Below the pieces are notes generated by a model, which saw only the letters and a program-made list of their open reading frames with translations, did not search any database and was not told where the DNA came from. Positions 1-64,000 of a stretch of DNA of 64,000 nt are shown here, piece after piece. How positions within the stretch are numbered: the first letter of the stretch is position 1; the number at the start of each line of letters is the position of its first letter. The position numbers and the translations under genes were made by a program. Location of the stretch: sequence record OR258281.1. One strand, given 5' to 3'.

Positions 1-2
1 GC

Positions 3-1028
3 CTTGCAAGCTATACTGATTTCTGCCAGCCAAGTGCATTGGAATGTCGTGGAACTATGTTTGAAGTTACGGAAAATGGTGAGTTTATTAAACTTGCAGC
101 CCGTACAATGGACAAGTTCTTTAACTATGGTGAAAATCCATTTACTATGTTTGACCAGAATATTTCAAGTTCAGAAATTGAAATGGCAATCGATAAACTG
201 GATGGTTCATTGATTAGTACTTTCATGAATGGTGATGTTCGTGTTCAGTGTAAATCTAAAGGTTCACTGTCATCTGACCATGCAGTACTGGCTAATAAAT
301 TACTACATAATGATCAGAAGAAAGAAAATGAAGTAGCTATTCTGGAGTCCTATGGGTATACAGTTAACTTCGAACTTCTTTCTCCTGAGTTACGTATTGT
401 TGTTCCTTACCAGAAAGATGAATTACGTTTCCTGAATGCACGTCATCGTATTAGTGGTGAATATCTTCCAATGGAAGAATTAAAAGAAAACTATCCAGAA
501 CTGTATAGTACTTCAGTATATCAGGATGGTTATATTTCTAAAGATGTACCAATGAAAGAAACATTACATCAAACAGTACTAGCAGTCCGAGAGATGAAGG
601 GTGATATTGAAGGTTTTGTATTCAAGTTAAAATCCGGTACATTCTTTAAGGTTAAAACTGATAAGTACTGTGCTTTACATCACACAAAAGATTCAATTAA
701 TGTTGACTCTAATCTTTTTAACGCAGTACTTGAGGGTGCAACAGATGATCTACGTCAATTGTTTGCAACGGATGAGTACTGTATTACTAAAATAAAAAAG
801 ATGGAACACTTGGTGTTCTCGACCTATAATAACATTATAGATGTTGTGACTAAGTTTTACGAAAGCAACAAACATCTTGAGCGAAAGGAATTCGCTTTGA
901 AGGTCCAGAAAGAATTAGATCCATCAATCGGAAAACATGGTTTAGCATTCATTATGTACTCAGGCAACACGCCGGATTATAAACTAGTAATGCAGAAAAA
1001 CATGAAATACATTCTAGAAGGGTTTTAA
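3..1028 (+). CDS. rnlA: RNA ligase 1 (T4 Rnl1-like), 5'-truncated by window edge
   Basis: Frame is open from base 3 (LASYTDFCQPSALECRGTMFE, like the T4 Rnl1 N-terminus); motif I KLDGSL, motif IV EGFV, motif V FKVKTDKY. Confidence 0.93.
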   Translation, partial: LASYTDFCQPSALECRGTMFEVTENGEFIKLAARTMDKFFNYGENPFTMFDQNISSSEIEMAIDKLDGSLISTFMNGDVRVQCKSKGSLSSDHAVLANKLLHNDQKKENEVAILESYGYTVNFELLSPELRIVVPYQKDELRFLNARHRISGEYLPMEELKENYPELYSTSVYQDGYISKDVPMKETLHQTVLAVREMKGDIEGFVFKLKSGTFFKVKTDKYCALHHTKDSINVDSNLFNAVLEGATDDLRQLFATDEYCITKIKKMEHLVFSTYNNIIDVVTKFYESNKHLERKEFALKVQKELDPSIGKHGLAFIMYSGNTPDYKLVMQKNMKYILEGF

Positions 1029-1053
1029 TACATAAGCCAGACAGGGAGTAGTT

Positions 1054-1347
1054 ATGGCTGAACCTAAGTATAAATTGAAAAAAGGTACTGTTAGAACACC
1101 AGAAGAACATAGAATGATACTTCAGGAAATAGACACGTTACATAAGAAAAAATCTGCTGTAGGTGTACATAAATCTAAAAAGAGAATCTATAACACTTTT
1201 GGTATTAGCAGTACTAAGTACAAAAAGACAAAGAAACCCCAAGAGCAAAAAGAACGTGTTCACATGCGAGAGATCTACGGATCGGATTTCTCAAATAATG
1301 TTAAACACACTGAAGACCTTACTTATAGAAAGAAAAAGTTCATATGA
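1054..1347 (+). CDS. Hypothetical basic protein
   Basis: 97 aa ORF, GGGAG SD, Lys-rich. Confidence 0.75.
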   Translation: MAEPKYKLKKGTVRTPEEHRMILQEIDTLHKKKSAVGVHKSKKRIYNTFGISSTKYKKTKKPQEQKERVHMREIYGSDFSNNVKHTEDLTYRKKKFI

Positions 1348-1568
1348 GAAAGCGTGTTAAAATGCTTACCCTTACTGTTAATGATAAACAGTACGTTATG
1401 CTTAAGCAGGACGGGTTCAATAACAAAACAGTACTTAACAATATCGTAGTAACTTTATGTGAGAATGGTGAAGAATATTATATTCTTGACCAGGATAAAA
1501 TCTTTGTAACCAAAACCGGAATGTTCCATCTTGAGATGGAATTGAGTTCCGAAATCGAATTTTACTAA
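1344..1568 (+). CDS. Hypothetical protein
   Basis: 74 aa, ATGA overlap with upstream stop. Confidence 0.75.
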   Translation: MRKRVKMLTLTVNDKQYVMLKQDGFNNKTVLNNIVVTLCENGEEYYILDQDKIFVTKTGMFHLEMELSSEIEFY

Positions 1569-1580
1569 GAGGATATAAAA

Positions 1581-1808
1581 GTGAACGTTCAGACAATTCA
1601 TAGCGTAGTTCAAGATGAAACAGTACTTAAATTCAACTCACTGAAAGATTACTTCAGATGTATTGAGTTTCTTGATGAACGAAATTTAAAATGGACACCA
1701 CTCACTTATAGTTCACTAAAAGATAAAGCAAGTATTCGTGTTGCAGAACATGAACTAATTATTATAACAAATAGATTTGGAATGGATAAATGGCTAAAAT
1801 CGTATTAA
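1581..1808 (+). CDS. Hypothetical protein
   Basis: 75 aa, GTG start with GAGGA SD. Confidence 0.7.
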   Translation: MNVQTIHSVVQDETVLKFNSLKDYFRCIEFLDERNLKWTPLTYSSLKDKASIRVAEHELIIITNRFGMDKWLKSY

Positions 1809-2758
1809 CTTACGGTCCACCCGGATGTGGAAAAAGTACTTGGGCTGTACAAAAGCTTTCTAAAATGAAAGGTAAAACAGTAATCGTGAATCTTGATGAT
1901 TTACGTTCTACTATGTTTGGTTCCCTAGATAATTACAAGTACAATAACGATAATGAGAAGTACGTAAGAACAGTACAGTGCTCTCAGGTTGAAGAACTTG
2001 TAAAAAAAGGAACTAACGTAATTATTGCCGATACAAACATGAATCCTAAAGTACTTAACTACTGGACAGGATTTGCTAAGGCTAATAATTGTATCATCGA
2101 TGTTCATGACTTCTTTGAAGAGTACCTAAAAGAAGAACTCATAAATGAAATGAAGAAAGTAGCTTCTGGTGCTAAACCAACAACCAGTGCTACAGAACAT
2201 GAGTACTTCTATCTCAAGAAGTTCAGAAAACGCTGTAAAGAATGGAACCTGAAACGTAGAGATTCAGTACCTGATGAAATCATTGACATGATGGTAGATA
2301 AGTACTTACTGCCTAATTATATGCTAAAACAACATGTATATGATCCTGCACTTCCATGGTGCGTTGTTTCAGACGTTGATGGTACTTTAATGCATATGGG
2401 TGATCGCAACCCATTTGATGAATCGTGTGTTATCAACGATACCCCTGATTATGCTGTATGTAACTCAGTACAACGAGACTTCGCAGAACATCATGGGTTT
2501 GTATTCAGTGGACGTCATGAGGGCTGTAAAGCTGATACGCTAACAAGTTTGTCTAATGCAGGAGTGATCCCGCATGAGATTTGCATGAGAGCCGATGATG
2601 ATAGCCGTTCTGATGATATTGTTAAGTACGAACTGTACCTTAAACATATCCACGGTAAGTACAACATTCTTCGCTGGTATGATGACCGTGACCAAGTAGT
2701 ACGGATGTTGCGTGATGTAGGTATTAAAGTATACCAGGTAGCTCCTGGAAACTTTTAA
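1790..2758 (+). CDS. pseT: Polynucleotide 5'-kinase/3'-phosphatase (PNKP)
   Basis: N-terminal P-loop GPPGCGKST and C-terminal HAD phosphatase SDVDGTL...DDR; near the Rnl1 gene. Confidence 0.95.
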   Translation: MAKIVLTYGPPGCGKSTWAVQKLSKMKGKTVIVNLDDLRSTMFGSLDNYKYNNDNEKYVRTVQCSQVEELVKKGTNVIIADTNMNPKVLNYWTGFAKANNCIIDVHDFFEEYLKEELINEMKKVASGAKPTTSATEHEYFYLKKFRKRCKEWNLKRRDSVPDEIIDMMVDKYLLPNYMLKQHVYDPALPWCVVSDVDGTLMHMGDRNPFDESCVINDTPDYAVCNSVQRDFAEHHGFVFSGRHEGCKADTLTSLSNAGVIPHEICMRADDDSRSDDIVKYELYLKHIHGKYNILRWYDDRDQVVRMLRDVGIKVYQVAPGNF

Positions 2759-2762
2759 ATTC

Positions 2763-2786
2763 AAGGGGAATTATATTCCCCTTTTT
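2763..2786 (+). terminator. Intrinsic terminator
   Basis: AAGGGGAAT-TAT-ATTCCCCTT then T run. Confidence 0.85.
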
Positions 2787-2805
2787 AATTAAAACTGGAA
2801 GTAAT

Positions 2806-3243
2806 ATGTATAAATTAACACATTCTGATGTACTGAGGATGATTGAAAATAAAAATCCACATCATCTCTTCGATTACATTAATGCAAAAGTACTACCAGA
2901 TAGTAATAATAAAATACTATTATCACATCTGAGAGAAACAATAAATTTACGTAATTCTGTAACATACTTTGGTATTTTCATTCCAGTAGAAAATATAATG
3001 GATTTAAAAGCACCAAAGGTATTCAACCTACTTGATGATGGTACTATTTTACATAATTCATATAGTACAACGATGGTAAGAGAGTCTCATTATTTTGATC
3101 CTGAAGATAAAGGTACTCAATTTAATTTTAACTTTATGTTCCCTGAACTTGGTATAAGTCTAGATGAAATTAACAAATTACTTGTGTTTTTAAAACATGT
3201 CCAAGTTAACATATTTTGCACATACGAGACAAAAAACAAATGA
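2806..3243 (+). CDS. FN-motif family small protein
   Basis: 145 aa; KGTQFNFNFMFPELGISLDEI motif near C-terminus. Confidence 0.75.
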   Translation: MYKLTHSDVLRMIENKNPHHLFDYINAKVLPDSNNKILLSHLRETINLRNSVTYFGIFIPVENIMDLKAPKVFNLLDDGTILHNSYSTTMVRESHYFDPEDKGTQFNFNFMFPELGISLDEINKLLVFLKHVQVNIFCTYETKNK

Positions 3244-4651: not shown

Positions 4652-4656
4652 AAAGG

Positions 4657-4686
4657 TGAAACATGTCGGCATTATATGCTATACTA
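4657..4686 (+). promoter_or_regulatory. Phage promoter TGAAAC(G/A)-N16-TATACTA (copy 1)
   Basis: TGAAACA 4657-4663, TATACT 4680-4685, same spacing as four other copies. Confidence 0.65.
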
Positions 4687-12218: not shown

Positions 12219-12248
12219 TGAAACGCTGAGAATTTGTGTCCTATACTA
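12219..12248 (+). promoter_or_regulatory. Phage promoter (copy 2), upstream of clpP
   Basis: TGAAACG 12219-12225, N16, TATACT 12242-12247. Confidence 0.8.
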
Positions 12249-12284
12249 CAGATGTGATTAACTACCAATTTAAAGGTTTATATA

Positions 12285-15992: not shown

Positions 15993-16667
15993 TTAGGCTG
16001 CTGCCGTTACGGTTACAGTAACAGTGTCAGTCTTTGAACCATCAGCAGTAGTAACAGTGATGGTAGCAGTACCAGCAGAAACACCAGTGATAACAGCGAT
16101 GTTGCCAGCACCAGATTTAGGTGCTACAGTGGCTACCGCTGCGTTTGAAGTGGTGAAGGTACGTGAAAGGTTAGTTGCATTAGACGGTGTAACAGCACTT
16201 GAATCTTCAACAGTACTACCAACAACAACGGTTGCAGTTTTGTTAACGAATGCAATACTCTGTACATGGATAATACCATCAGTACCTTTTGAATAATCCA
16301 TGTCATAAACAGCAGTACCGTCAGAAACGATTACCTTGTTTAGCTGGAAACGAATTACTAGACCTTCCTGAACACTAGCAGAGTTAACTGCACGAACAAA
16401 GAACGTGCCTGGTGCTAATAGTGAAGCTAGTTCTGCATCAGTTTTAGATTTATCAAGTTCTACACCATTTGCATCTTTAGTACTGATTAGTAGTTTAGAA
16501 AAAAGGCTTGAATCTGATGGATCTAATAGATCGAAACGAATTACACTGCATTGTTTACTGATACGTAGACCAGTTTTAACAGTACCGTCAGCCAGTTTAG
16601 CACCAGCAACGACAATACCCGTAGGACCGAATGGGAATTTGTCTCGTCCCGCAATAGGTTTACCCAT
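15993..16667 (-). CDS. Virion structural protein with C-terminal bacterial Ig-like (Big_2) domain
   Basis: Start reassigned to MGKPIAG (AGGAG SD), 224 aa; VTPSNAT...TSNAAVATV...GVSAGTATITVTT Ig-like motif; only minus-strand gene. Confidence 0.8.
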   Translation of the reverse strand: MGKPIAGRDKFPFGPTGIVVAGAKLADGTVKTGLRISKQCSVIRFDLLDPSDSSLFSKLLISTKDANGVELDKSKTDAELASLLAPGTFFVRAVNSASVQEGLVIRFQLNKVIVSDGTAVYDMDYSKGTDGIIHVQSIAFVNKTATVVVGSTVEDSSAVTPSNATNLSRTFTTSNAAVATVAPKSGAGNIAVITGVSAGTATITVTTADGSKTDTVTVTVTAAA

Positions 16668-16683
16668 TTTAAATCTCCTATAT

Positions 16684-17259
16684 ATGAAACTATTAAAGTA
16701 TATTGTTACTGTATTTATTTTTACCCTTTCAATATCATCAGCCAATGCTGGAAGCGTGATACAACGGGACAAGCAAACTGCATATTTCAACGGTACTATT
16801 ATGCCTAAAGATATGAGTGATCTTTATGATGAATTTGATAAAGAACCATTCAGTACTTTAATACTCACTTCAGGTGGTGGTGATTATGCTGAAGGTATTA
16901 AACTGGCTAGGTTTGTACAGGCGAATAATATTACAGTACGAGTAAGTAAAGTATGTGCCAGTGCTTGTACCTTTGCTTTCTTCATGGCACCCAATAAACT
17001 TATGGATGATAATGCGTATTTACTACTGCACAACATAAGTATGTACAGTACTGATGCAAAAGACGATGATGTTATATCAGTTCTACAGGCTAAACAGTAC
17101 TCAGAACAGGCGGCGATAGCCAGTTCAAGAATGATACTAATTTATGCTCGTGCTGGAATTCCACTATCAGTACTGGACCTTGTTGCTTCAAGTACCGGGA
17201 AAAATAAAGTACTAATCAACAAAGAAGATTTGATTCGTTTTAAAATTTTGAAAAACTGA
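16684..17259 (+). CDS. Exported ClpP/crotonase-fold (periplasmic peptidase-like) protein
   Basis: Start reassigned to MKLLKYIVTVFIFTLSISSANA (signal peptide); LTSGGG, CASAC, LLH motifs; 191 aa. Confidence 0.7.
   Translation: MKLLKYIVTVFIFTLSISSANAGSVIQRDKQTAYFNGTIMPKDMSDLYDEFDKEPFSTLILTSGGGDYAEGIKLARFVQANNITVRVSKVCASACTFAFFMAPNKLMDDNAYLLLHNISMYSTDAKDDDVISVLQAKQYSEQAAIASSRMILIYARAGIPLSVLDLVASSTGKNKVLINKEDLIRFKILKN
16712..16717 (-). promoter_or_regulatory. Putative T4-type late promoter (TAAATA) for the Ig-like gene
   Basis: TAAATA on - strand 45 nt before the ATG; same hexamer precedes phoH (25168), 49780 (49744), tail genes (50062) and the ferritin-like gene (56017); weak alone in AT-rich DNA. 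Confidence 0.4.
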
Positions 17260-17260
17260 G

Positions 17261-17290
17261 TGAAACGAATTAACAATGTGTTCTATACTA
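17261..17290 (+). promoter_or_regulatory. Phage promoter (copy 3), upstream of the NAD salvage genes
   Basis: TGAAACG 17261-17267, N16, TATACT 17284-17289. Confidence 0.8.
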
Positions 17291-17335
17291 TAGACACAAG
17301 CACAAAGAGGTCATTTTGACCTTCTAAACTTAACT

Positions 17336-17357
17336 CTAAGGGAGTCTTAGATATGAA
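17336..17357 (+). promoter_or_regulatory. 22-nt RBS hairpin, identical at nadM and nadV
   Basis: CTAAGGGAGTCTTAGATATGAA = CTAAG-GGAGT-CTTAG inverted repeat; identical copy at 19030-19051. Confidence 0.7.
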
Positions 17358-18447
17358 TAACGAAAATGTTTATGTATACATCGGGCGTTTCCAAACCGCT
17401 CACATCGGGCATGAAGCCACAATCAAACATGCAATGCAGAATTGCGACCGTTTAGTACTGCTTGTCGGTTCATCCGAATTAGCACGTGACCCAAAGAATC
17501 CATTTACCTTTAATGAACGTTTCCAGATCCTGGATGCAGTATGTAATCGTATTGCTTCTGAAGAATGGGCTAAAGGTCGTAAAGTCAAATACAATATTAA
17601 ACCGCTACATGATTTTGTATACGACAATACTAAATGGCTGAAAGAAGTACAGTCACAAGTACTATCCTGTACTAAAAGTTCTAATATTACTATTACTGGT
17701 TGTCGTAAAGATGGTGATGTAAGTACGTACTACCTTGAGTTCTTCCCACAGTGGAAACAGGACTTCATTTCCGAAATGAAAGGTGCACGTGATAAGTACG
17801 GAGTTCCACATGTTAATGTAACAGTTAACAGTACTGCTATTCGTAAAGAATATCTTGATAACTGTGTAGTTAACAAGTTGGTACTGGTTCCTGAAGCTTC
17901 AGAGTTTCTTGAGAAGTTCATTAAACTTAACCTTGAAACCTTTGAACTACTCCAGAAAGAACACAAGTTCGTAGAACAGTACAAAGCTGATATGAAAGCT
18001 AAACTGCCATACGATAACATCCCGTTCCTTACTGGTGATGCGTTAGTTGTAAGTGCAGGTCATGTACTACTGGTTAAGCGTAAAACTTTCCCAGGTAAAG
18101 GTTTGTATGCACTTCCCGGCGGTTTCTTTGATGCATGGAAAGATCAGTCTCAAGTAGATACTGCCATTCGTGAATTACAAGAAGAAACTCGCATTAAAGT
18201 ACCAGAGAAAGTACTTCGTGGAAGTATTCGTAAGTCAGAAGAATTCGGTGATATGAATCGTTCTCTTCGCTGGCGTATCATTACTAAGTGTGTACACATT
18301 CAGTTACCTGATAATACACTACCTAAAGTAAAAGGTGCTGATGATGCGGAGAAAGCATTCTGGATGCCATTAGGTGATGTACTTAAGAACCGTGACAAGT
18401 TCTTTGAAGACCACTTTAGCATTATGGATCATTTCTTAAGCCTGTAA
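17353..18447 (+). CDS. nadM: Bifunctional NMN adenylyltransferase / Nudix (ADP-ribose) hydrolase
   Basis: GRFQTAHIGH (HxGH), KNPFTFNER, NSTAIR; Nudix box GGFFD...AIRELQEETRI. Confidence 0.93.
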   Translation: MNNENVYVYIGRFQTAHIGHEATIKHAMQNCDRLVLLVGSSELARDPKNPFTFNERFQILDAVCNRIASEEWAKGRKVKYNIKPLHDFVYDNTKWLKEVQSQVLSCTKSSNITITGCRKDGDVSTYYLEFFPQWKQDFISEMKGARDKYGVPHVNVTVNSTAIRKEYLDNCVVNKLVLVPEASEFLEKFIKLNLETFELLQKEHKFVEQYKADMKAKLPYDNIPFLTGDALVVSAGHVLLVKRKTFPGKGLYALPGGFFDAWKDQSQVDTAIRELQEETRIKVPEKVLRGSIRKSEEFGDMNRSLRWRIITKCVHIQLPDNTLPKVKGADDAEKAFWMPLGDVLKNRDKFFEDHFSIMDHFLSL

Positions 18448-19029: not shown

Positions 19030-19051
19030 CTAAGGGAGTCTTAGATATGAA
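19030..19051 (+). promoter_or_regulatory. 22-nt RBS hairpin (second copy)
   Basis: Identical to 17336-17357. Confidence 0.7.
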
Positions 19052-20531
19052 ACACAATAATCACAAACTAGAACGTAACATTATCCTCGATGCAGATTCT
19101 TATAAAAATGACCATGGCAGAATGCTAAAATATGGTGTTGAGTTTATGGAATCCAGTATCGTACCTCGTAAGCCAAGTAAAACTGCAACTCATGTTGTTG
19201 CTACTGGTCATCAGTACTTAATTAAAGCGTACCTAACACAACGCCTTACTAAAGAAATGATTGATGAAGCACAAGTAGAGATTGAAGAACAGGGTTACGA
19301 ATTCGACCGTGAACGTTGGGAATATATTCTCGATAAGTATGATGGTAAATTGCCACTACTAGTACGTGCTGTACCGGAAGGTACTGTATTACCAGTTGGT
19401 ACTCCAGTAGTACGTATCGTGAATACTGACCGTAAATGTGCATGGTTAGTCAGCTATATTGAAACTATGTTCCAGCGTGGTATTTGGTATGCAACAACTG
19501 TTGCAAGTATTGCTCGTGAACTGAAAGAATTCATGCAGGAAACAATGCTTCGTCATAGTGGTGAATCTTTTGTAGATTATCACCTTCATAACTTCGGTTC
19601 TCGCGGTTGTGATAGCTATGAAGATGATATTACTTCTAGTATGGCTCATGCACTTCTGTTCAATGGTTCAGACAGTATGCAGGCGAACCGTAATATTAAG
19701 TTCTACTACAATACTAATAAAGCATATACTTCATCAGTAATTGCAACTGAACATTCCGTTACCTGTTCAAACAGTAATGCTGCTACACGTGATGATTTCG
19801 CAATGGCTGAAAAAGCTATTCGTCTTCTTGAGCAAGCTGTTATCCGTTTTGAGAAAACCGGTAAAGGTGTACCAATTGTATCAGTAGTAATTGATACATA
19901 TGATGCGTATCGTTTTGTTCGTGAATTTATCGGTACTCGTCTAAGAAATGCACTTATTGAATTAGGTAAACGTGGTGGTCGTTTAGTACTTCGTCCTGAC
20001 AGCGGTAATGCTACAACAATGCCAATCGACATTATTAAAATTGCGATGGAGAAGTTTGGTTATACCATAAATGCACAGGGTTATAAAGTACTTCCATCAT
20101 ACATTGGAGTACTTCAGGGTGATGGCATCAATCAGGAAAGTATTCGTGAAATTGTTGCTAATCTGGATAAAGAACAAATCAGTATTCAGAACCTGTTGTT
20201 TGGTATGGGTGGTAAACTTACTCATCCAGAAGGTGGTCGTGATCATTTCTCATTTGCAATGAAAGCTACTGCTCAGTACTCAAAAGATGATGGCTGGGAA
20301 GACCTGTTCAAAGACCCAATTACTGATGTTGGTAAACGTAGTCTCAAAGGTCGTGTAACTACCTTTAAATGTAATCAGTCCGGTAAGATCTTTGCTGAAC
20401 GTGTAGAACTTCAAGAAGTTAACAAGTTCATTACTGATATGATGGTTGATTGTTATAAAGATGGTGAAGCAATGAATGAAAGTACTTTCGATGAAAGTCG
20501 TGTTCGTGCTAATCATGGCCTAGCGGCATAA
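19047..20531 (+). CDS. nadV: Nicotinamide phosphoribosyltransferase (NAMPT)
   Basis: DADSYK, LHNFGSRG, ATEHS, VIDTYD, RPDSG, QGDGI, FGMGG, KRSLKGR. Confidence 0.95.
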   Translation: MKHNNHKLERNIILDADSYKNDHGRMLKYGVEFMESSIVPRKPSKTATHVVATGHQYLIKAYLTQRLTKEMIDEAQVEIEEQGYEFDRERWEYILDKYDGKLPLLVRAVPEGTVLPVGTPVVRIVNTDRKCAWLVSYIETMFQRGIWYATTVASIARELKEFMQETMLRHSGESFVDYHLHNFGSRGCDSYEDDITSSMAHALLFNGSDSMQANRNIKFYYNTNKAYTSSVIATEHSVTCSNSNAATRDDFAMAEKAIRLLEQAVIRFEKTGKGVPIVSVVIDTYDAYRFVREFIGTRLRNALIELGKRGGRLVLRPDSGNATTMPIDIIKIAMEKFGYTINAQGYKVLPSYIGVLQGDGINQESIREIVANLDKEQISIQNLLFGMGGKLTHPEGGRDHFSFAMKATAQYSKDDGWEDLFKDPITDVGKRSLKGRVTTFKCNQSGKIFAERVELQEVNKFITDMMVDCYKDGEAMNESTFDESRVRANHGLAA

Positions 20532-20538: not shown

Positions 20539-20564
20539 AGGGCAGTTCAGTACTGCCCTATTTT
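20539..20564 (+). terminator. Intrinsic terminator
   Basis: AGGGCAGT-TCAGT-ACTGCCCT then ATTTT. Confidence 0.8.
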
Positions 20565-20772
20565 AATTTAGACATAAGGTTTCAATATGATTGGTATTAT
20601 TGCATTTTGGTGTATTACTGCTTATCCGAATATAGGATTATACATGTGTGCTATATTATGTCAGCACAAACAGGCTCTATTCCAAAAGAAATGAAAATCC
20701 CATTAATTTGCATTGCATTATGGTTCTTTTTCTGCTATATTGGCTTTCCAATTTTACTATTTTGCTTATAAT

Positions 20773-22451: not shown

Positions 22452-22512
22452 TGTTATGTATTGAAGTACTACTGCTATGGTATGTAGTACTTCCTTTATT
22501 GTGGAGTATAAT

Positions 22513-27305: not shown

Positions 27306-27322
27306 ATAAATGTCCTATACTA
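27293..27322 (+). promoter_or_regulatory. Phage promoter (copy 4)
   Basis: TGAAACG 27293-27299, N16, TATACT 27316-27321. Confidence 0.8.
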
Positions 27323-27355
27323 CAGGTGTCAGAAATAAAACGTTAACCTAAAAAA

Positions 27356-36867: not shown

Positions 36868-36895
36868 TAATAGTACTGGAAATCCAGTACTATTA
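36868..36895. repeat. Perfect 12-bp inverted repeat built from two AGTACT sites
   Basis: TAATAGTACTGG-AAAT-CCAGTACTATTA; no T tract. Confidence 0.8.
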
Positions 36896-38543: not shown

Positions 38544-38659
38544 GAAAGTACTAAAGCCGTGCCTTTGGGTAACATCAATATAAGCCCGTACACTGTAAAT
38601 GTTAATTCTGGATATTTCCTTACTCGAAAATACCATACATCCAGGGCGTTAGTACTTTC
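38544..38659 (+). ncRNA. Putative small structured RNA (multi-branch fold)
   Basis: 11-bp closing stem GAAAGTACTAA/TTAGTACTTTC enclosing GCCT/GGGC, TAACAT/ATGTTA and CTGGAT/ATCCAG stems; no ORF; strand uncertain. Confidence 0.35.
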
Positions 38660-50086: not shown

Positions 50087-50101
50087 ATTAAGGAAAATTT
50101 A

Positions 50102-50674
50102 ATGGCACATAAAGTTATAGGAGACCTATCGGTAGAAGGTACTCTTTCGGTACAAGGGAAAAATGTTGGTACTACAATTAATGGTACTAAAGTAGATTCA
50201 AGCGGTAACATTAATTTAGACTTTTATACATTAGACGAATTACGTGAAATGATCAGTGTACTCCCGGTAACTAAGTTTGTAGCTAGTACTTATAGTTCAA
50301 GTGCATTTGTACTCACTATTACTAACCCTAGTACATTATTCATGGCAGGCCAAGTACTAACTATACCAAGTCTTACTATCAATTTGGCTACAGTAGATCC
50401 AGCACCAGCAAATAAAACCTTTTATGTCTATGTTATTCTAAATCAGGGTGTTGCTTCTTATAATTTTACAACTGTACCTCTTTCTGAGTCAGTTAACTCC
50501 AACTTTGGAGTTTTATATGTTGGTAATGTAATAACTGACAGTACTAAGATTCTTCAGTACGGTATTACTGATCGCGTCAGGCTTGACATTTATGCACCAT
50601 CAGTAAATGCTTCAGGATTATCATTCCCGGTTAGTACTGGATTTCCATCAAGTTCAGGTAATATAACATGGTAA
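50102..50674 (+). CDS. Tail-fibre/baseplate-associated protein, paralog A
   Basis: Start moved to MAHKVIG (AAGGA SD); shares PANKTFYVYV and FPVSTG.P modules with the next two genes. Confidence 0.7.
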   Translation: MAHKVIGDLSVEGTLSVQGKNVGTTINGTKVDSSGNINLDFYTLDELREMISVLPVTKFVASTYSSSAFVLTITNPSTLFMAGQVLTIPSLTINLATVDPAPANKTFYVYVILNQGVASYNFTTVPLSESVNSNFGVLYVGNVITDSTKILQYGITDRVRLDIYAPSVNASGLSFPVSTGFPSSSGNITW

Positions 50675-50683
50675 GGATAAAAT

Positions 50684-51268
50684 ATGTCTAAAAGTTATAG
50701 CGATTTAAAAGTAAGTGGTGATATTTCAATTCAAGGAAATAAAGTACTCAAATCAGTCAGTGCTAATGGTTCTACGCCTGTATTACCTGATAGTTCAGGA
50801 AAAGTTACACTGGATATTGTAGATAAAAATACAGTTAACAACTTTTTTGCTAATATACCATTATCAAGATATGGACTGCTTAATCAGTCTTCAAGTACTG
50901 CAACCGTTTCTAATTATGTAATAACGTTTTCTAACAGTACACCTGTATTTTTAAATGGAATATATTACGAGTTTCCTGCTAATATAGCAGTGGACCTTAA
51001 ATTAGTAGATGCATCCCCAGCAAATAAAACATTTTACGTATATGTAAGGAATGTATCGGGTACACTAATGTATGTTGCAAGTACTACTGAAGTAGCAGAA
51101 AGCGAATCAAATATGTATATTTTCAAGTACTTAGCAGATGGAACTGCATCAATTACAGTACCATTTGTTTCAAGATTGTACGTATACCGACCATCATTAA
51201 CACAAATTGGATCAGCATTTCCGGTAAGTACTGGAAATCCATCAGGTACTGGTGCAATTGGCTGGTAA
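50684..51268 (+). CDS. Tail-fibre/baseplate-associated protein, paralog B
   Basis: PANKTFYVYV, SRLYVYRPS, FPVSTGNP. Confidence 0.7.
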   Translation: MSKSYSDLKVSGDISIQGNKVLKSVSANGSTPVLPDSSGKVTLDIVDKNTVNNFFANIPLSRYGLLNQSSSTATVSNYVITFSNSTPVFLNGIYYEFPANIAVDLKLVDASPANKTFYVYVRNVSGTLMYVASTTEVAESESNMYIFKYLADGTASITVPFVSRLYVYRPSLTQIGSAFPVSTGNPSGTGAIGW

Positions 51269-51278
51269 AGGAATATAA

Positions 51279-54014
51279 ATGAAAAAAATTAAAGGGAATT
51301 TAGACAGCAAATCCAGTATAACTAGTGCATCATCTTCTGTAGTTACTGGTTTAAACAATGTTACACCAGACGGTGCTGGAAACATTAACTACCCTATGGT
51401 GAATAAAACTGATTTTACCAAAATGCTTAATATGTTACCAATTTCACGTGTTGGTACATTATCATATCTTCCAATGAACGTAAGTGGTTCATTTGAGGGT
51501 GGTACAACAATGTCATATCGTTCTTGTTTTCCAGGATTATTAGAAAATGACGGTACTTTGGTATTCCTACGTCCGGGAACGAATGGTAGTACTATTAACT
51601 ACTATTATTCTTATGTTAATAATGCACTAGGTACTAGTTCGTTAAAAGCTACACATACAAATAAAGGCTATTTTACATCAAGCTCAGATGATATTTGTAT
51701 GCTCAATTCTGATACACAGAATGTTTTGTTTTATCAGAATCAGACGAAAGGTACTATTGGTCTTATTTTAACAAATGGAACCATGGATCAACGCCAACAT
51801 GTTGGTGCAACTCTTCCAGTAAGTTCTATGCCGTATTATAACCAGTACGCTTTGAAAGTCGGAACATATATCTATGTTTTCTCTTTATATTCAAGTACTA
51901 TAAGTGCCACTGATATTAGTAATTATTATACTAATCTAACCGACCCATTCAAAATTATAGTATATCGTATTCCAGTATCTGAAATTCAATCAGGTACAAT
52001 TAATACAATTGAGCAGGTTTCTGGAATTACCGGTACTGACCTGTACGGTAACAGTACTAATTCTGATGGTATAATTATAGCACCTAAAGCACTATCTAAC
52101 AACTTGTCAGACCAAGCTTATGCGAAGTATGATACTAATATTGCAGGTGGTACAATTTGTGGGTATACATCCGTTGGTCTAAAAGCGGTGTATGATGGTA
52201 ATAATAGTATTAACTTATGCTGGACAAACAACTGTTATTTTACTAATAGTAATCAGCGTAAAGATACTTATGTAGGATTCAATACGTATTATAATGTAAG
52301 TTCAAAATCATATAGTACTAACCTTACAACTGGTTCTGCTATTACTGCTACTGCATCTTCCAGTACATCACCAATAACAATTAGTAATCCATATGAGATA
52401 ACTGGTAAACAGTTAGACGGGAATTATGATGTTATTTCTGATGGTGTGCAGGGTTCAGCTTTTATAAGTGATGGCGGTTACTTGTTTACTATAACTGATA
52501 AGTACGTACTGAGTGATTTTTATTTCATTATCAGAGCATCAATTCAAGGTTTTACTACCAAGTATAGTGCAATGAATGTTCGTTCAAGAACACTGAATAA
52601 TGTTATAAAGTATCAGCAACAATCATCATACGGTTCAGTAATAGGTGATAACCTTATAGGTGCAATTCCAGTGAGTTCAACTAAAGTACTGACTGCAAGT
52701 AATGGTACTTATAATGGCGTGAACTACAGTGCAAGTTCTTCTAAATCAGTTGCTGATTTTGGAACAACAAGAACATTCACATACAATTCAGTACAAAAAG
52801 GTACTAGAACTGGTTATGCACCTCAAGCAGACCGAGCACCAGTAACTGCTAACCCGGCGTATTTGACTTATGGCTTAGTATCTCTGATTGACGCTGCTGG
52901 TAACTGTCAGGCATATGGTACATCATTTGTCGAAGGATTCAAGAATTCTACCGGGATGGCGTTTAATGCAACTTCCAAAACATTTACTGGAGTACTTAAC
53001 GTTCAGCAAAGTGCATATGATAATGCAAGAAATGCGGTTATTAGTGCACAGAATATTTCTGGTTATACAACGACTAGACTTGCACTTTATTATGTTCCTG
53101 ATTCGTCATATACTTCCAGTATAGGTATGTTGTATGTAACTTATAGTAATATGGTAAGAATATATATTTTCGGTTGTACTTGTACAGTAAGTAACAGTAC
53201 TATTACTAACATAACTTACAATACTTTTTACAATATGGATCAGGTTTCTCCAGCATTTTCAGTTTCTAGTGGTTCACCATATTACAAAGGTGGTTTAGTA
53301 GTAGCAAAATACTCAGATTTCACTTTTATTGGATTTGATGGTACTTGTTCTCTTAATGTTCCTGGTGATACTAATGAAAGAACATATGCTTATAGTGCAA
53401 GTACGACAGGTGTAGTTGATAGTACTTCATTCCTAAGTCATAATTCTTATCATACTGCACAGCTTAGTGATAACTACTGGTATAGTGCAATACCTAACTA
53501 TGGATTTGGTTGTTTTATATTTGGTAATAATGACTTTGGTACTAAACTTATTTTCAGACAGTTTGGTAATACACAAAGTGCTTATGCTAATCTTAAAAAT
53601 TTAACCAATTATACCGATACTGTAATTCTGGCACAAGATGTAGCACAGGGTTTTCAAGTTTATTTTACTGAAGAAGTTCCAGTATTAGTGAGTGGAAGTT
53701 TCTACAAACTGCCAATCAGTACCATAGACTTACTTACTATAAAAGCTAATCCTGCAAACACTACATTCTATGGCTATGTTCAGATCGTAAACGGTGTATG
53801 TAAATACACTATCAGTACTACCGTTCTTCCTGAAGATCTTAACACTATATTTTTCTGTACTATTGTAACTGACGCAAGCCGTATAAGTTCTATAAGTGCA
53901 GAGAAAGTTACCAGATTCATGAATTATCGTCTTAGTACAACAAACAAGGGTTCGGCTATACCGGTAAGTACTGGTGCACCGACTGACAGTAACGTTACAA
54001 GATGGAAAAATTAA
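51279..54014 (+). CDS. Large tail fibre / receptor-binding protein, paralog C with ~700 aa insert
   Basis: 911 aa S/T/N/Y-rich beta protein; N- and C-terminal modules homologous to paralogs A and B (PANTTFYGYV, IPVSTGAP). Confidence 0.7.
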   Translation: MKKIKGNLDSKSSITSASSSVVTGLNNVTPDGAGNINYPMVNKTDFTKMLNMLPISRVGTLSYLPMNVSGSFEGGTTMSYRSCFPGLLENDGTLVFLRPGTNGSTINYYYSYVNNALGTSSLKATHTNKGYFTSSSDDICMLNSDTQNVLFYQNQTKGTIGLILTNGTMDQRQHVGATLPVSSMPYYNQYALKVGTYIYVFSLYSSTISATDISNYYTNLTDPFKIIVYRIPVSEIQSGTINTIEQVSGITGTDLYGNSTNSDGIIIAPKALSNNLSDQAYAKYDTNIAGGTICGYTSVGLKAVYDGNNSINLCWTNNCYFTNSNQRKDTYVGFNTYYNVSSKSYSTNLTTGSAITATASSSTSPITISNPYEITGKQLDGNYDVISDGVQGSAFISDGGYLFTITDKYVLSDFYFIIRASIQGFTTKYSAMNVRSRTLNNVIKYQQQSSYGSVIGDNLIGAIPVSSTKVLTASNGTYNGVNYSASSSKSVADFGTTRTFTYNSVQKGTRTGYAPQADRAPVTANPAYLTYGLVSLIDAAGNCQAYGTSFVEGFKNSTGMAFNATSKTFTGVLNVQQSAYDNARNAVISAQNISGYTTTRLALYYVPDSSYTSSIGMLYVTYSNMVRIYIFGCTCTVSNSTITNITYNTFYNMDQVSPAFSVSSGSPYYKGGLVVAKYSDFTFIGFDGTCSLNVPGDTNERTYAYSASTTGVVDSTSFLSHNSYHTAQLSDNYWYSAIPNYGFGCFIFGNNDFGTKLIFRQFGNTQSAYANLKNLTNYTDTVILAQDVAQGFQVYFTEEVPVLVSGSFYKLPISTIDLLTIKANPANTTFYGYVQIVNGVCKYTISTTVLPEDLNTIFFCTIVTDASRISSISAEKVTRFMNYRLSTTNKGSAIPVSTGAPTDSNVTRWKN

Positions 54015-55324: not shown

Positions 55325-55341
55325 CAATATATTCTATACTA
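55312..55341 (+). promoter_or_regulatory. Phage promoter (copy 5), pointing into the non-coding region
   Basis: TGAAACG 55312-55318 (in the last HNH codons), N16, TATACT 55335-55340. Confidence 0.8.
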
Positions 55342-55342
55342 T

Positions 55343-55370
55343 AAGGGAGAAGGTAACACTTCTCCTTTTT
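55343..55370 (+). terminator. Terminator-like hairpin at the predicted transcription start
   Basis: AAGGGAGAAG-GTAACA-CTTCTCCTTTTT. Confidence 0.65.
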
Positions 55371-56040
55371 CAATTCTGACTGGTGTACCCGTTAGTCGTG
55401 TTAAGTACTTAAGAGCTAGTACTTAGTTGGTACAATATAATAAACCTGATCCTATCGAAAAGTAGATGGCAGATGAGTAGTCCAGACAGTACGATGAGCA
55501 AATAAAACCCGTGTAAATTACTCCAAGCGAATGCAGAGGCCACGGCAATCAGGCTCAATAAAGGCGAGAGAAAACATTATCGCCCTTGATAGAGATTTAG
55601 GTCTAAAACCCTACCATGTTGAAAGGGAACCAATACATTTATGTATTGGTATTATAAAGTACTGCTGAATTAGTATTTTATAAAAGCGTAGTGATGAGCT
55701 ACGACCGTTGTATAAGACCGAGGTAACTGGAAACCGGACAACCCGCCAGTGCCTGTAATTGGATAAGATAGATTCGTCCAAATATTACAGAATCCTTGAA
55801 TTCAGAATGTTAATGACTACCAACGTCAAATTATTGATTTCTTCCTCCTTGCGGGGGATGGAAATGTACAAACAAACCACGTCAAGTAGTAATTGCTGTT
55901 AAAGCTTTTAGTAGTTTTAAAATCAATTATAATGAATTGAATGAGAAATGAATGAACGTAGTGAATTCATTACGAATGAAAATTCTTGACTTACGTAGTA
56001 AGGCAATCAAAAAGGCTAAATAGTTCAGTACTAAAACTCC
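55371..56040 (+). ncRNA. Putative large structured non-coding RNA (alternatively replication origin)
   Basis: No ORF of 60 aa or more on either strand; 45-47% GC in sampled lines; at least seven hairpins, several needing G-U pairs; GAATGA-type iterations at 55931-55980. Confidence 0.5.
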
Positions 56041-56055
56041 TATGAGGTTTTAATA

Positions 56056-59853: not shown

Positions 59854-59858
59854 TCTTA

Positions 59859-61992: not shown

Positions 61993-61995
61993 ACT

Positions 61996-62493
61996 ATGTT
62001 TAAGAAAATCGTAATGGTTACACTGGCAGTACTGGCAATCTCTGCATGTGACGACAAAAAGCAACAGAATGTACAACAGCAGTACCCACAGAATCAACAG
62101 GTGCAAAACCAGCAGTATCAAGATCAACAGCCACAGCAGGTATATGTACAGCAGCAGCCAGGACAGCAACCTGTAACTGTAATTAACCAGCAACCATCGC
62201 ACGATAATGGTTTGGCAACTGCGGTGGTAGCAGGAGCAGCGGGTTATTACATGGGCCGGAACAGTAATAACTCAAATTATGATCGTAACCGTTATGATGA
62301 CCGTGATCGTTCGTATAATAACCGTACTGTTAAGAACCGTACCGTAATTAATAACTATACAATTAATCAGGCTCCTAAACAGCAGAAGTCCAGTACTTAT
62401 TACGGTTCAAGTTCAAAAAGTACTACATCCGTCTCAAGTTCTAGCTCTAAACCACGTAGTGTTTACAGCAAAGTATTCAACAAGAGACGTTAA
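61996..62493 (+). CDS. Gln-rich lipoprotein with glycine-zipper segment
   Basis: LAISAC lipobox; Q-rich tract; AVVAGAAGYYMG; RYDDRDR and S-rich tail. Confidence 0.75.
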   Translation: MFKKIVMVTLAVLAISACDDKKQQNVQQQYPQNQQVQNQQYQDQQPQQVYVQQQPGQQPVTVINQQPSHDNGLATAVVAGAAGYYMGRNSNNSNYDRNRYDDRDRSYNNRTVKNRTVINNYTINQAPKQQKSSTYYGSSSKSTTSVSSSSSKPRSVYSKVFNKRR

Positions 62494-62495
62494 TT

Positions 62496-62915
62496 ATGAC
62501 TATTTTTAAAGTATGGCTAGTGTATGCTTTAATTCTAATAGGGTCTCTTTATGGTTGTTTTCATTTGATGCATAATGATCCAGATCGTATTGAACATCCA
62601 TACACAATGAAGGTACTACGAATCATCCAGGAAGACCATAAATCAAGTACTAACTATCGCGGAGTATTTCAGATGGAAAGCGGTAAAGTAGTAGATTTTA
62701 GTGTTACTGCGTCAGTATTCGTTAAGTACCAACCGGGTGATACTATTAGTTTTAACCTAAGTAACAGAGAACTAGGTATAGATAATAGTGAAAATAGTAC
62801 CTATGCCTTTTTTGTTTTTATTTGGTGCTTTATTTTCGGATTTTTTGGTGCTGTATTAATAACTGAAAAAATTGAACCCAAAATTACAAGAAAACGACTG
62901 TATAACAATAGATAA
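62496..62915 (+). CDS. Two-TM membrane protein with soluble beta domain
   Basis: N- and C-terminal TM segments. Confidence 0.75.
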   Translation: MTIFKVWLVYALILIGSLYGCFHLMHNDPDRIEHPYTMKVLRIIQEDHKSSTNYRGVFQMESGKVVDFSVTASVFVKYQPGDTISFNLSNRELGIDNSENSTYAFFVFIWCFIFGFFGAVLITEKIEPKITRKRLYNNR

Positions 62916-62918
62916 CTT

Positions 62919-62949
62919 AAAAAGGTACTCAAATTGAGTACCTTTTTTT
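62919..62949 (+). terminator. Intrinsic terminator
   Basis: AAAAAGGTACTCA-AAT-TGAGTACCTTTTTTT. Confidence 0.85.
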
Positions 62950-62967
62950 ATTGGAGAAAATATAATA

Positions 62968-64000
62968 ATGAATCTGATTAAAGACTCTCGGGCATTAGTA
63001 ACTGTACGTACTATTAACAAAATTCTTCCTATTCCTGGTGCTGACTTTATTATGGAAGCACATATTGACGGATGGAGTTGTGTAGTAAAGAAAGATGAAT
63101 TCAAAGAAGGTGATTACTGTTTGTACTTCGAAATTGATTCATTCCTTCCGGCTAATGATCCTAAATTCCTGTTCCTTCGTAAAAATGGTGTAAAAACTGA
63201 TGATACTGGTGCAGAACGTATTCGTCTTCGTTCTATTAAACTTAAAGGTATCATTTCTCAAGGATTAGCACTTCCTTTAACGGTACTTGACGAACAAACA
63301 GTTCAAGAACTACTAATGGTAGTGGATTATAGTTCATATGATACTATTGATAATCATGCTATTGATGCAATGTATGAAGCACTGGAAACTGAACGTTATG
63401 GTATTGAAGAATTCCTGAACGTTACTAAGTACGAACGTCCAGACGAAAAGAATGGTGGTGCTGGTAATGCTAAAACTGCTGGTAATTTCCCATTAAGTAT
63501 TCCTAAAACCGACGAAGATCGTTTGCAGAACGTATATGGAACTCTTAGTACTCATTTTCAGGATGTTTATTTTCGTCCTAGTCTCAAGCTTGATGGTAGC
63601 AGTATTACTATTGGGTACTTCAGTGACCCGAGTTATTTCCTTACTAAGCTTGATGATGAAATGATTACGTACAATGAAGAAAAACAAGAACTAGAATGTA
63701 CTCCAATTCCATATCCTCATAATTATGGTACTTCTCAGGTAATTGTATGTTCACGTAATCTTGCGTTGAAGTACACACCTGAATCGCGGTTCTGGCAGGG
63801 AGTAAACAATAATGATCTTGCCACTCGCCTAAAAGAGTACTGTGAAGAATATGATGTACAACTTGCAGTACAGGGTGAACTAATGGGTCCGGGGATTCAG
63901 GGTAACCGTGAAAAACTGGAACAGTACGACATTTATGCATTCCGTATTTGGGATATTACTAATAAATGCTTCCTTGATGATAGTGAATTCATGGAGACAT
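62968..64000 (+). CDS. RNA ligase (Rnl2/DRB0094-like) with N-terminal OB-fold, 3'-truncated by window edge (not in ORF track)
   Basis: My translation: MNLIKDSRALVTVRTI...YFEIDSFLP...IKLKGIISQGLALP...PKTDEDRLQN...KLDGSS...CSRNL...QGELMGPGIQGN. Confidence 0.9.
   Translation, partial: MNLIKDSRALVTVRTINKILPIPGADFIMEAHIDGWSCVVKKDEFKEGDYCLYFEIDSFLPANDPKFLFLRKNGVKTDDTGAERIRLRSIKLKGIISQGLALPLTVLDEQTVQELLMVVDYSSYDTIDNHAIDAMYEALETERYGIEEFLNVTKYERPDEKNGGAGNAKTAGNFPLSIPKTDEDRLQNVYGTLSTHFQDVYFRPSLKLDGSSITIGYFSDPSYFLTKLDDEMITYNEEKQELECTPIPYPHNYGTSQVIVCSRNLALKYTPESRFWQGVNNNDLATRLKEYCEEYDVQLAVQGELMGPGIQGNREKLEQYDIYAFRIWDITNKCFLDDSEFMET

Follow-up and report, generated by a model that had tools for sequence, protein, structure and literature searches.

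Chi (GCTGGTGG), KOPS and uptake sequences are asymmetric, orientation-biased words that are read by host machines. TF1 of phage SPO1 depends on hydroxymethyluracil DNA, and the stoperators of cluster A mycobacteriophages are asymmetric, oriented sites of 13-14 bp that number 20-35 per genome. The over-representation of CCWGG in E. coli, attributed to very-short-patch repair, is less than 2-fold and is accompanied by depleted neighbours. The function of HIP1 (GCGATCGC), the hyper-abundant palindrome of cyanobacteria, is debated, with nucleoid structure and methylation-dependent DNA uptake and recombination as the proposals (PMC5861425, PMC13756078). Palindrome avoidance is the general rule in phages (PMC6286503). 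Here we describe a palindrome, AGTACT, that is hyper-abundant in Xanthomonas phage XaC1 (OR258281.1). The window analysed comprises 64,000 nucleotides, bases 62001-126000 of the 349-kb genome. Searches of the accessible literature found no prior description of an excess of AGTACT, ScaI sites or GTAC in jumbo or Rak2-like phages.

Abundance of AGTACT and the level of selection

AGTACT occurs 235 times in the window, where base composition predicts 21.6 copies and dinucleotide frequencies 24.3 (a 9.7 fold excess over the latter), and ranks first by count among all 4096 hexamers. AGATCT and ACTAGT, palindromes of the same composition, occur 10 times each. In the complete genome there are 1356 copies where 118 are expected, an 11.5-fold excess. 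The description of AGTACT as highly iterated in the initial annotation is thus borne out, and its hand counts for two stretches (the first two entries below) are exact.

Sites recur about every 272 bp, evenly across the 118 genes and the spacers. Counts per gene vary slightly less than a Poisson process predicts (chi2 88.6, 117 df; 24 genes lack a site, 28 expected). Spacing is near-Poisson and also slightly too even (CV 0.91), with gaps of 40 bp or less scarce and a largest AGTACT-free gap of 1.7 kb. A metagene analysis of the window shows no bias to gene starts or ends. The individual loci considered are as follows.

1-3000, no strand: 15 AGTACT copies in the position list
50101-51300, no strand: nine AGTACT copies in the position list
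20541-20565, plus strand: terminator-like hairpin GGGCAGT-TCAGT-ACTGCCC, then TATTTT; AGTACT (20549) lies across loop and stem
22465-22491, no strand: AGTACT pair 21 bp apart (22465, 22486) immediately upstream of XaC1_165, with the spacing of the boxes of the early-promoter cassette
36868-36895, no strand: perfect intergenic hairpin TAATAGTACTGGA/TCCAGTACTATTA with a 12-bp stem and two AGTACT (36872, 36886)
38544-38659, plus strand: AGTACT pair 104 bp apart (38547/38651) with pairable flanks GAAAGTACTAA / TTAGTACTTTC; weak long-range stem (MFE -29.7 kcal/mol, z = -1.78)
55401-55424, no strand: AGTACT pair 14 bp apart (55404, 55418) that opens a 731-bp gap without genes
62916-62967, plus strand: terminator-like hairpin AAAGGTACTC-AAATT-GAGTACCTTTTTTT, both arms containing the GTAC core

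Of three intergenic hairpins proposed earlier, that at 36868-36895 is confirmed, its stem being formed from the two AGTACT copies. At 38544-38659 a stem is possible, but weak and long-range only. The AGTACT at 55401-55412 is present, as one member of the pair listed above. Rfam and tRNA scans of the 64-kb window returned nothing.

Flanking bases are mirror-symmetric (A at -1 in 44% and T at +1 in 43% of sites; T at -2, A at +2) and random past two bases on either side. The first base of the hexamer falls in frame 0 at 79 sites, frame 1 at 56 and frame 2 at 83, in agreement with the earlier statement that all frames are used. Coding DNA has 3.6 sites per kb and non-coding DNA 4.2. Density is unchanged in blocks of minus-strand genes, where small asymmetries among variants reverse with gene orientation, the behaviour to be expected of coding constraints. 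A synonymous-codon shuffle, which holds protein sequence, dipeptides and codon usage fixed within each gene, yields 62.6 +/- 6.6 copies in the window genes against 219 in the real ones (z = 23.7; highest of 500 shuffles, 90), and a whole-codon shuffle yields 33. The excess therefore outlives the codon- and dipeptide-preserving null that the initial annotation had set as its refuting check. Because it does so, and because spacers are as dense as genes, flanks are symmetric and gene orientation has no effect, DNA, not protein, is the level of selection for AGTACT, as had been proposed.

Proteins nevertheless carry the imprint. Ser-Thr and Val-Leu dipeptides are raised about 1.6-fold, which we attribute to AGTACT; the hexamer encodes 57% of Ser-Thr (19% expected) and 65% of Val-Leu dipeptides (32% expected). 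Selection per site is weak and targets density, with a scaled coefficient of about 1.4-1.7 from the usage of these two dipeptides.

It is highly improbable that the excess arose secondarily, whether from coding (a preference for codons or dipeptides, or the tRNA set of the phage), from RNA (an AGUACU signal in mRNA) or from repeats (copies of promoters, terminators or mobile repeats). Ser and Thr are most often encoded by AGT and ACT, XaC1 carries a tRNA-Ser reading AGU, and part of the sites lie in promoter cassettes and hairpins. However, the protein- and codon-preserving null fails (z = 24), and all frames and the spacers are enriched, which rules out codon, dipeptide and tRNA explanations. 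The randomness of the flanks past two bases and the near-Poisson spacing reject a tandem or dispersed repeat element. A directional RNA signal is disfavoured by the symmetric flanks and by the variant asymmetries that reverse with gene strand. Promoters and terminators are rejected as the origin of most sites, there being no metagene preference and only tens of the 1356 copies in promoter cassettes.

Motif shape, clade limits and turnover

The initial annotation had raised the specificity of AGTACT relative to other hexamers with a GTAC core. AGTACT is foremost, but the signal is graded around that core and not all-or-none, since other AGTAC-containing hexamers are also enriched (AGTACC, AGTACG and AGTACA, with GGTACT, are 1.6-2.3 fold up in the window). 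One-mismatch variants changed at central positions occur at about expectation and those changed at outer positions 1.1-2.3 fold above it, so that each of the 18 neighbours reaches at least its expected count and none is depleted. The deamination products AGTATT and AATACT occur as often as expected, and GGTACC and CGTACG do not occur. Across the genome, the 5' and 3' flanks of the core are independent (1318 AGTACT predicted, 1356 counted), and AGT and ACT are enriched as a pair at spacing 0 only, i.e., as the contiguous hexamer. AGTACT thus has dyad symmetry, its half-sites contribute additively and its flanks are graded. This specificity resembles a binding matrix more than an all-or-none enzyme site, and the graded pattern could also come from two overlapping strand-specific pentamers.

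The latter would fit an AGTAC pentamer that replication or recombination machinery reads single-stranded, whichever strand carries it, an explanation that we consider distinctly unlikely. The word might be a T4-type primase start (the hexamer being one cryptic 3' base plus a 5-nt primer template), a site-specific nick seeding recombination-dependent replication, or a Chi-like nuclease-taming word. As the core is self-complementary, copies on the two strands would overlap as AGTACT and be active in either fork or nuclease direction. No pentamers deviate more than AGTAC and GTACT (z = 23, 19.5), and the hexamer adds nothing beyond them, given the independent flanks and an order-4 Markov prediction of 230 copies against the 235 counted in the window. 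The even spread and the 1.7 kb maximum gap suit a need for regular sites, and XaC1 encodes a primase, a DnaB-like helicase, a RecA-like protein and gp46/47-like nucleases. However, known primases require just 3-5 bases, so no enrichment would be needed, and Okazaki spacing is much wider than the 260 bp per site seen here. The analysis identified no nicking enzyme, the orientation bias that is the hallmark of Chi cannot be shown by a palindrome, and the conserved placement of GTAC at -35 and -10 (see below) is left unexplained.

Comparison with relatives, sampled at 33-49 kb each, shows the excess to be common to all Rak2-like jumbo phages sampled. It is 3-9 fold in XaC1, XbC2, GAP32, 121Q, RaK2 and 11 IMG/VR loci, or 3-7 fold when XaC1 is set aside, and absent or reversed in PA5oct, SCTP-2, Atu_ph07 and 69 more distant loci (capsid protein 64-68% identical). 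The excess is therefore a heritable clade trait of the Rak2-like jumbo phages. Palindrome avoidance makes a sharper contrast than first claimed, as 23 of the 64 six-base palindromes are missing from the XaC1 genome. CGATCG occurs once in 349 kb and GCGC not at all (327 expected). Excess of AGTACT and total absence of GCGC are strictly coupled: both appear on one branch, and neither occurs without the other in any of the 8 reference phages or 80 metagenomic loci. An origin of GTAC by double deamination of methylated GCGC is rejected because the roughly 330 expected GCGC are too few for the surplus of about 2800 GTAC.

The coupling could be read as self-recognition of unmodified phage DNA by sequence alone, with AGTACT multiplied as 'self' and GCGC purged as 'non-self', which we hold to be quite doubtful. 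Phage factors would coat, transcribe or spare AGTACT-dense DNA, and phage nucleases would attack GCGC-bearing host DNA, a sequence-based counterpart of T4 hydroxymethylcytosine. AGTACT stands at one per 260 bp in the phage and at about one per 10 kb, estimated from composition, in a 65% GC host, and GCGC is frequent in host DNA.

Individual sites turn over. In 10 orthologous genes from 5 genera, 144 of 490 AGTACT (29%) are common between genera, compared with 84 (17%) expected from same-composition hexamers. Sites are thus retained 1.7 times better, a modest effect. The other 71% are unshared, and the partner sequences mostly differ by 2-4 letters. Density is kept; position is not.

New sites must thus arise continually in every lineage, as would also be expected of a neutral process, either context-dependent mutation bias or very-short-patch-like repair turning near-cognate words into AGTACT. 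We regard such a process as very unlikely. Of the mechanisms listed in the initial annotation, which also included an organising protein, a recombination hotspot and a decoy, biased repair is the one disfavoured; it predicts depleted neighbours, and none of the 18 is depleted, with AGTATT and AATACT at expectation. The better retention of AGTACT than of control hexamers and the altered amino-acid sequences also argue against neutrality, and no Vsr or cytosine methylase is present in the XaC1 annotation.

A putative docking site, early promoters and methylation

We tentatively favour, at a probability of about 0.4, AGTACT as the docking site of a putative clade-specific, phage-encoded, symmetric DNA-binding protein. 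Such a reader would be a symmetric dimer that binds duplex DNA, strict about the GTAC core and more tolerant of the purine/pyrimidine flanks, and weak selection would uphold AGTACT density in every Rak2-like jumbo phage, over more than 1300 positions. Genome-wide, the sites may mark or organise phage DNA. Each would add little, so that count and even spread would matter and exact position would not. More than 1300 sites per genome copy would demand a very abundant protein. In a Pfam scan of 19 of 550 proteins (ten around the early sigma factor, plus annotated methylases, nucleases and a 'regulator'), the sigma factor was the only protein with a DNA-binding domain, and no candidate reader emerged.

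The same putative protein could switch early transcription in the terminal repeat. This 32-kb repeat has a non-coding AGTACT density of 10.8 per kb and contains about 20 copies of an early-promoter cassette, AAAAGTAC(C/T)TTGCA-N13-(A/G)GTACTTTATAAT-GTACTTA, in which a GTAC or AGTACT box immediately precedes the -35 and the -10 hexamer of a sigma-70-type promoter. The same pair of GTAC boxes adjoins -35 and -10 in early promoters of XaC1, GAP32 and RaK2, representing three genera. The box upstream of -35 (AAAAGTA) also matches the proximal UP-element consensus, and so may just serve host RNA polymerase. Phasing of GTAC at about 11 bp (10.9 bp) is significant in the XaC1 terminal repeat only, was not seen in GAP32, RaK2 or the window, and probably reflects the repeated cassettes.

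Alternatively, AGTACT or its GTAC core may be the target of a phage DNA-modifying enzyme, the candidate being an orphan Dam-family N6-adenine methyltransferase conserved in the clade; we judge this unlikely. Modified AGTACT would serve strand discrimination, early-promoter timing or packaging. The initial annotation had suggested a search for a methyltransferase. XaC1_104, a PF05869 enzyme (Pfam), was the only DNA methyltransferase annotated in XaC1 (PMC11273794) to be followed across the enriched genera; it has orthologues of 47-55% identity in every one of them, mostly beside the same cytidyltransferase gene. Of the 75 records matching it at E <= 1e-32, about 66 belong to Rak2-like phages and the PA5oct group contributes none, an absence from outgroups that depends on the strict E-value. 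RaK2 DNA is reported to be methylated and resistant to many enzymes (PMC3622015), NdeI fails on XaC1 DNA despite 162 sites (PMC11273794), and HIP1 is also linked to two orphan methylases (PMC4390886, PMC13756078). However, the characterised member of the XaC1_104 family, M.Phi93DAM, methylates GATC (PMC4190342), not AGTACT, and the phyletic pattern of XaC1_104 is common to hundreds of other genes. An enzyme site should also be sharp, whereas outer one-off variants of AGTACT are enriched too. Finally, a plain methyl group shields its own site only and so gives no reason to multiply AGTACT.

Significance and comparison with known systems

Phages are textbook palindrome avoiders, yet a clade of extreme avoidance keeps one palindrome at ten times expectation, at the cost of altered protein sequences. 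The effect is large, reproducible and clade-defining. It points to a putative DNA-reading protein or modification in phages developed for biocontrol and therapy, whose target bacteria include E. coli, Klebsiella, Erwinia, Xanthomonas and others. Digests with ScaI, RsaI and TatI would be quick diagnostics of clade and modification state, and genome recoding or synthesis should treat AGTACT density as a constrained feature. The phages also provide a small, fast-evolving model for the thirty-year-old question of HIP1, the purpose of a hyper-abundant palindrome.

The comparison with HIP1 holds as phenomenology. Both are short palindromes that are hyper-abundant in genes and spacers, in all frames and clade-wide, and in both the sites are conserved beyond control words, modestly here (29% vs 17%) and more weakly than in HIP1. 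AGTACT differs in being a word of 6 rather than 8 bp that is neither HIP1 nor a close variant, in its 10-fold excess (15-300 fold for HIP1), in being carried by a virus rather than a cell, and in having no known cognate methylase.

Restriction-site avoidance is extreme in XaC1, and AGTACT runs counter to it; its excess is therefore no signature of such avoidance. CCWGG is also over-represented at the DNA level, as a methylase site; unlike CCWGG, AGTACT is in 10-fold excess and its neighbours are not depleted. Chi, KOPS and uptake sequences share with AGTACT a genome-wide excess and a value that lies in density, and Chi-type words mark DNA as 'self' for a processive machine, a role that AGTACT may share. 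Unlike Chi, AGTACT is a palindrome, thus orientation cannot be encoded, and it tracks the phage clade, whose hosts range from Xanthomonas to E. coli. The sites of SPO1 TF1 and the stoperators of cluster A mycobacteriophages resemble AGTACT in being many genome-wide sites for a phage protein (the reader being putative here), and those of TF1 also in their concentration at early promoters in a terminal repeat. AGTACT differs from both in comprising more than 1300 sites of six bases. As in repeated operators, the site is dyad-symmetric and graded, and its boxes adjoin promoter elements across relatives.

Excess of AGTACT in the window and the genome

The window matches bases 62001-126000 of Xanthomonas phage XaC1 (OR258281.1) exactly; XaC1 is a jumbo myovirus of X. 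vesicatoria with a genome of 348,967 bp (35% G+C) and a direct terminal repeat of 32,031 bp. AGTACT ranks first in frequency among all hexamers of the window, with 235 copies (21.6 are expected from base composition and 24.3 from dinucleotide composition). The palindromes of the same composition, AGATCT and ACTAGT, occur 10 times each. The initial annotation had counted by hand 15 copies in bases 1-3000 and 9 in 50101-51300, and both counts are exact. Using the coordinates of the deposited annotation (118 coding sequences), 218 copies are coding and 17 are non-coding (3.6 and 4.2 per kb, respectively). As was also claimed, the word occurs in all frames (79, 56 and 83 sites in frames 0, 1 and 2).

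The excess outlasts a codon- and dipeptide-preserving null model. When synonymous codons are permuted gene by gene, so that all proteins, all dipeptides and the codon usage of each gene are retained, 62.6 ± 6.6 copies result, compared to 219 observed (z = 23.7); permutation of whole codons yields 33. The synonymous null errs on the conservative side, since AGTACT has already inflated the codon usage retained by this null. The word has altered protein sequences: the window encodes 140 Ser-Thr dipeptides (87 expected) and 182 Val-Leu dipeptides (110 expected), and the reversed pairs, Thr-Ser and Leu-Val, are at expectation. AGTACT spells 57% of the Ser-Thr pairs (codon usage predicts 19%). An origin as a by-product of coding, RNA or repeats is the explanation that we rank fifth, and it is scarcely credible.

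A phage tRNA-Ser (L006:45983-46070, called by both ARAGORN and Rfam) carries an unusual anticodon, ACU (loop CUACUAA), and thereby reads AGU. This codon forms the first half of AGTACT and is the most frequent one for Ser (35%).

The complete XaC1 genome carries 1356 copies (118 expected), with 19-83 in each 10-kb bin, the minus-strand late structural genes included. Outside the terminal repeat, the spacing is near-Poisson and slightly too even (CV 0.91), with 95 gaps of ≤40 bp (141 expected) and a largest gap of 1.7 kb. Per-gene counts are under-dispersed, and no preference for gene starts or gene ends was identified. The few intergenic hairpins described in the initial annotation consist simply of two neighbouring copies of a self-complementary word.

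Nearly all genes of the window are on the plus strand, and they encode proteins of nucleotide metabolism and RNA repair, along with many unknown proteins. The sole annotated minus-strand gene ('major tail protein') lies amid plus-strand genes and overlaps plus-strand ORFs at 16024-16296 and 16405-17259, and its annotation looks doubtful. A (C/T)CTATACTA(C/T)AG box sits 45-70 nt upstream of four plus-strand genes (5 matches with at most one mismatch in the window, 1.9 expected) and may be a middle promoter. The most depleted hexamers under the synonymous null (all genes of the window) are TAAATA (9 vs. 56 expected) and TATTTA (9 vs. 43); this depletion is consistent with avoidance of ATAAATA, the T4-like late promoter that has been reported for CBB and GAP32. 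A 418-aa protein with a C-terminal WGR domain is encoded near genes for NAD+ salvage (nicotinamide phosphoribosyltransferase and an NMN adenylyltransferase-like protein), and a gene for a macro-domain ('ADP-ribose binding') protein is situated just beyond the window; together, these hint at ADP-ribose-related conflict functions.

Features of the window
15993-16667, minus strand: 'major tail protein'
12240-12251, 17282-17293, 27314-27325: (C/T)CTATACTA(C/T)AG box; variant near 57565
37101-38357, 19047-20531, 17353-18447: WGR-domain protein and NAD+ salvage genes
55325-56055: gap of 731 bp that starts with a double AGTACT; no annotated gene, tRNA or Rfam match

Form and turnover of the word

Under the synonymous null, the top deviant words are GTAC (4-mer), AGTAC and GTACT (5-mers) and AGTACT (6-mer), and the remaining top deviant words all overlap these. 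Across the XaC1 genome GTAC is 3.5-fold enriched, with A on its 5' side in 58% of cases and T on its 3' side in 58%. The flanks are independent, in that they predict 1318 copies of AGTACT (1356 observed), and the further flanks are weakly and symmetrically A/T, i.e., (T)(A)AGTACT(T)(A). The contiguous form alone counts: AGT-N(k)-ACT (k = 1 to 12) is about 1-2 times as frequent as expected, and ACTAGT is under-represented in the whole-genome comparison. A single change in any of the four central letters brings the count back near expectation; with a change in the outer letters, an excess of 1.1-2.3 fold remains.

Small asymmetries between variants (e.g., AGTACA vs. TGTACT) invert in minus-strand gene blocks, and are therefore attributed to coding constraints, not to a directional signal. 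That AGTAC could be a strand-level signal involved in priming, nicking or nuclease attenuation is the explanation that we rank third, and we consider it distinctly unlikely.

No depletion is seen for any of the 18 one-mismatch neighbours of AGTACT, and the ratio to expectation is 1.0 for both AGTATT and AATACT. We aligned ten orthologous genes of five genera by codon. Of 490 AGTACT sites, 144 (29%) are also AGTACT in the partner genome, compared to 84 (17%) predicted from hexamers of the same composition, and the partner sequence usually differs by 2-4 letters. Therefore, the sites are mildly protected yet mostly turning over, with the density held in every lineage. The occupied share of the available Ser-Thr and Val-Leu positions gives a scaled coefficient of selection (or bias) of about 1.4-1.7, the range typical for weak selection over many sites. 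Neutral bias or repair is ranked fourth and is highly unlikely. The patterns suggest that selection acts on double-stranded DNA and favours a dyad-symmetric word, the benefit of which would rise with copy number.

Clade limits, early promoters and candidate proteins

We compared relatives using 33-50 kb samples around the gene of the major capsid protein. AGTACT exceeds the number expected from base composition 8.7-fold in XaC1, 6.5-fold in XbC2, 5.9-fold in GAP32, 5.3-fold in 121Q and 5.7-fold in RaK2. According to the records, the hosts of these reference phages are Xanthomonas, Cronobacter, Escherichia and Klebsiella. There is no excess in the outgroup samples of PA5oct (0 copies vs. 14 expected), SCTP-2 (1.4-fold) and Atu_ph07 (0.2-fold). 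Among 80 IMG/VR loci, the 11 with capsid proteins at least 87% identical have 323 copies (62 expected), and the 69 with capsid proteins 64-68% identical have 167 (206 expected).

Exactly the same split is seen for GCGC, which is absent from the entire XaC1 genome (327 expected) and from every AGTACT-rich relative (0 vs. 214 expected in the 11 close loci), and is normal in all others (1114 vs. 1170 in the 69 distant loci). The AGTACT excess is a clade trait coupled to GCGC loss. Such absolute, host-independent avoidance may involve a phage-encoded GCGC-directed nuclease rather than host restriction alone. Also lacking from XaC1 are 23 of the 64 six-base palindromes, including GGTACC and CGTACG, for which the flank frequencies of GTAC predict about 100 and 18 copies. 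Thus, AGTACT is the single extreme exception in an extreme palindrome avoider.

Absent palindromes
Whole XaC1 genome (window included) and loci L009-L011, L013 and L018-L028: GCGC
Whole XaC1 genome: six-base palindromes including GGTACC, CGTACG, CTGCAG, CAGCTG, GGATCC and GTCGAC

The strict coupling of the excess to the GCGC purge suggests that Rak2-like phages might distinguish their own DNA from that of the host solely by its sequence, a proposal that we regard as unlikely. These phages are not known to carry a global base substitution, e.g., hydroxymethylcytosine (PMC3622015, PMC5259590).

AGTACT is twice as dense in the XaC1 terminal repeat as in the rest of the genome (10.8 per kb in the spacers of the repeat), and about three times denser in the RaK2 early region. 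A sigma-70-type promoter cassette, ATTAAAAGTAC(C/T)TTGCA - N13 - (A/G)GGTACTTTATAAT - GTACTTA, is present in the XaC1 repeat in about 20 copies, some of which have AGTACT in each of the two upstream boxes, at a distance of 21 bp. The early promoters of GAP32 have the form AAAAGTAC-TTGCAA/TTGACA ... GAGTAC-TTTATAAT and those of RaK2 the form (A)GTAC-TTGACAA ... CAGTACTG-TATAAT. Thus, GTAC boxes directly upstream of -35 and -10 are conserved across three genera, the core genes of which differ at a third of bases. The CBB paper called these promoters RpoD-like, noted an UP-like element in them and did not mention GTAC (PMC5259590).

GTAC-box promoter cassettes
L003:2400-26000: XaC1 terminal repeat
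L016:7700-15400: GAP32
L017:2200-9600: RaK2

A third GTAC/AGTACT box is often found at the start site of the early cassettes, and some XaC1 early promoters are preceded by AGTACTTAAAA repeats with 11-bp spacing.

We rank first, with a probability of roughly 40%, that AGTACT would serve as a docking site for a symmetric DNA-binding protein specific to the clade, which would also act at early promoters. Pfam searches for a sequence-specific DNA-binding candidate identified none among the annotated nucleases, a 'regulator' and the WGR-domain protein, or among ten proteins encoded near the early sigma factor.

Ranked second, and rather unlikely, is that AGTACT could be the target of a phage DNA-modifying enzyme, in the manner of HIP1. 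A Pfam scan identified XaC1_104 as an N6-adenine methyltransferase (PF05869, Dam-family). Orthologues are present in all enriched genera, usually adjoining the same cytidyltransferase gene, and none was found in the PA5oct group at E ≤ 1e-32. However, M.Phi93DAM, the characterised member of the family, methylates GATC (PMC4190342). The DNA of RaK2 is reported to be methylated (PMC3622015), and that of XaC1 is cut by EcoRI and not by EcoRV or NdeI (PMC11273794). Paucity of sites may explain the EcoRV result (27 vs. 118 expected), but NdeI sites are not scarce (162 in the genome), so some modification of XaC1 DNA is likely.

Dam-family methyltransferase genes
L008:1-546: XaC1_104
L016:36342-36884: GAP32_068

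Comparison with known systems

In the literature searched, we found no earlier account of these phages being enriched in AGTACT or GTAC (earlier mention is possible in subscription journals, which were outside the search). Chi-like words are defined by asymmetry, restriction avoidance by depletion and VSP-driven excess by depletion of neighbours, and AGTACT displays none of these. Among known phenomena, HIP1 of cyanobacteria comes closest: it is hyper-abundant, more conserved than expected under neutrality, associated with orphan methylases and of debated function (PMC5861425, PMC4390886, PMC13756078). AGTACT shares the phenomenology of HIP1. The word itself, the scale and the carrier are different, as is any proven link to a methylase, and we therefore do not class AGTACT as a HIP1 member.
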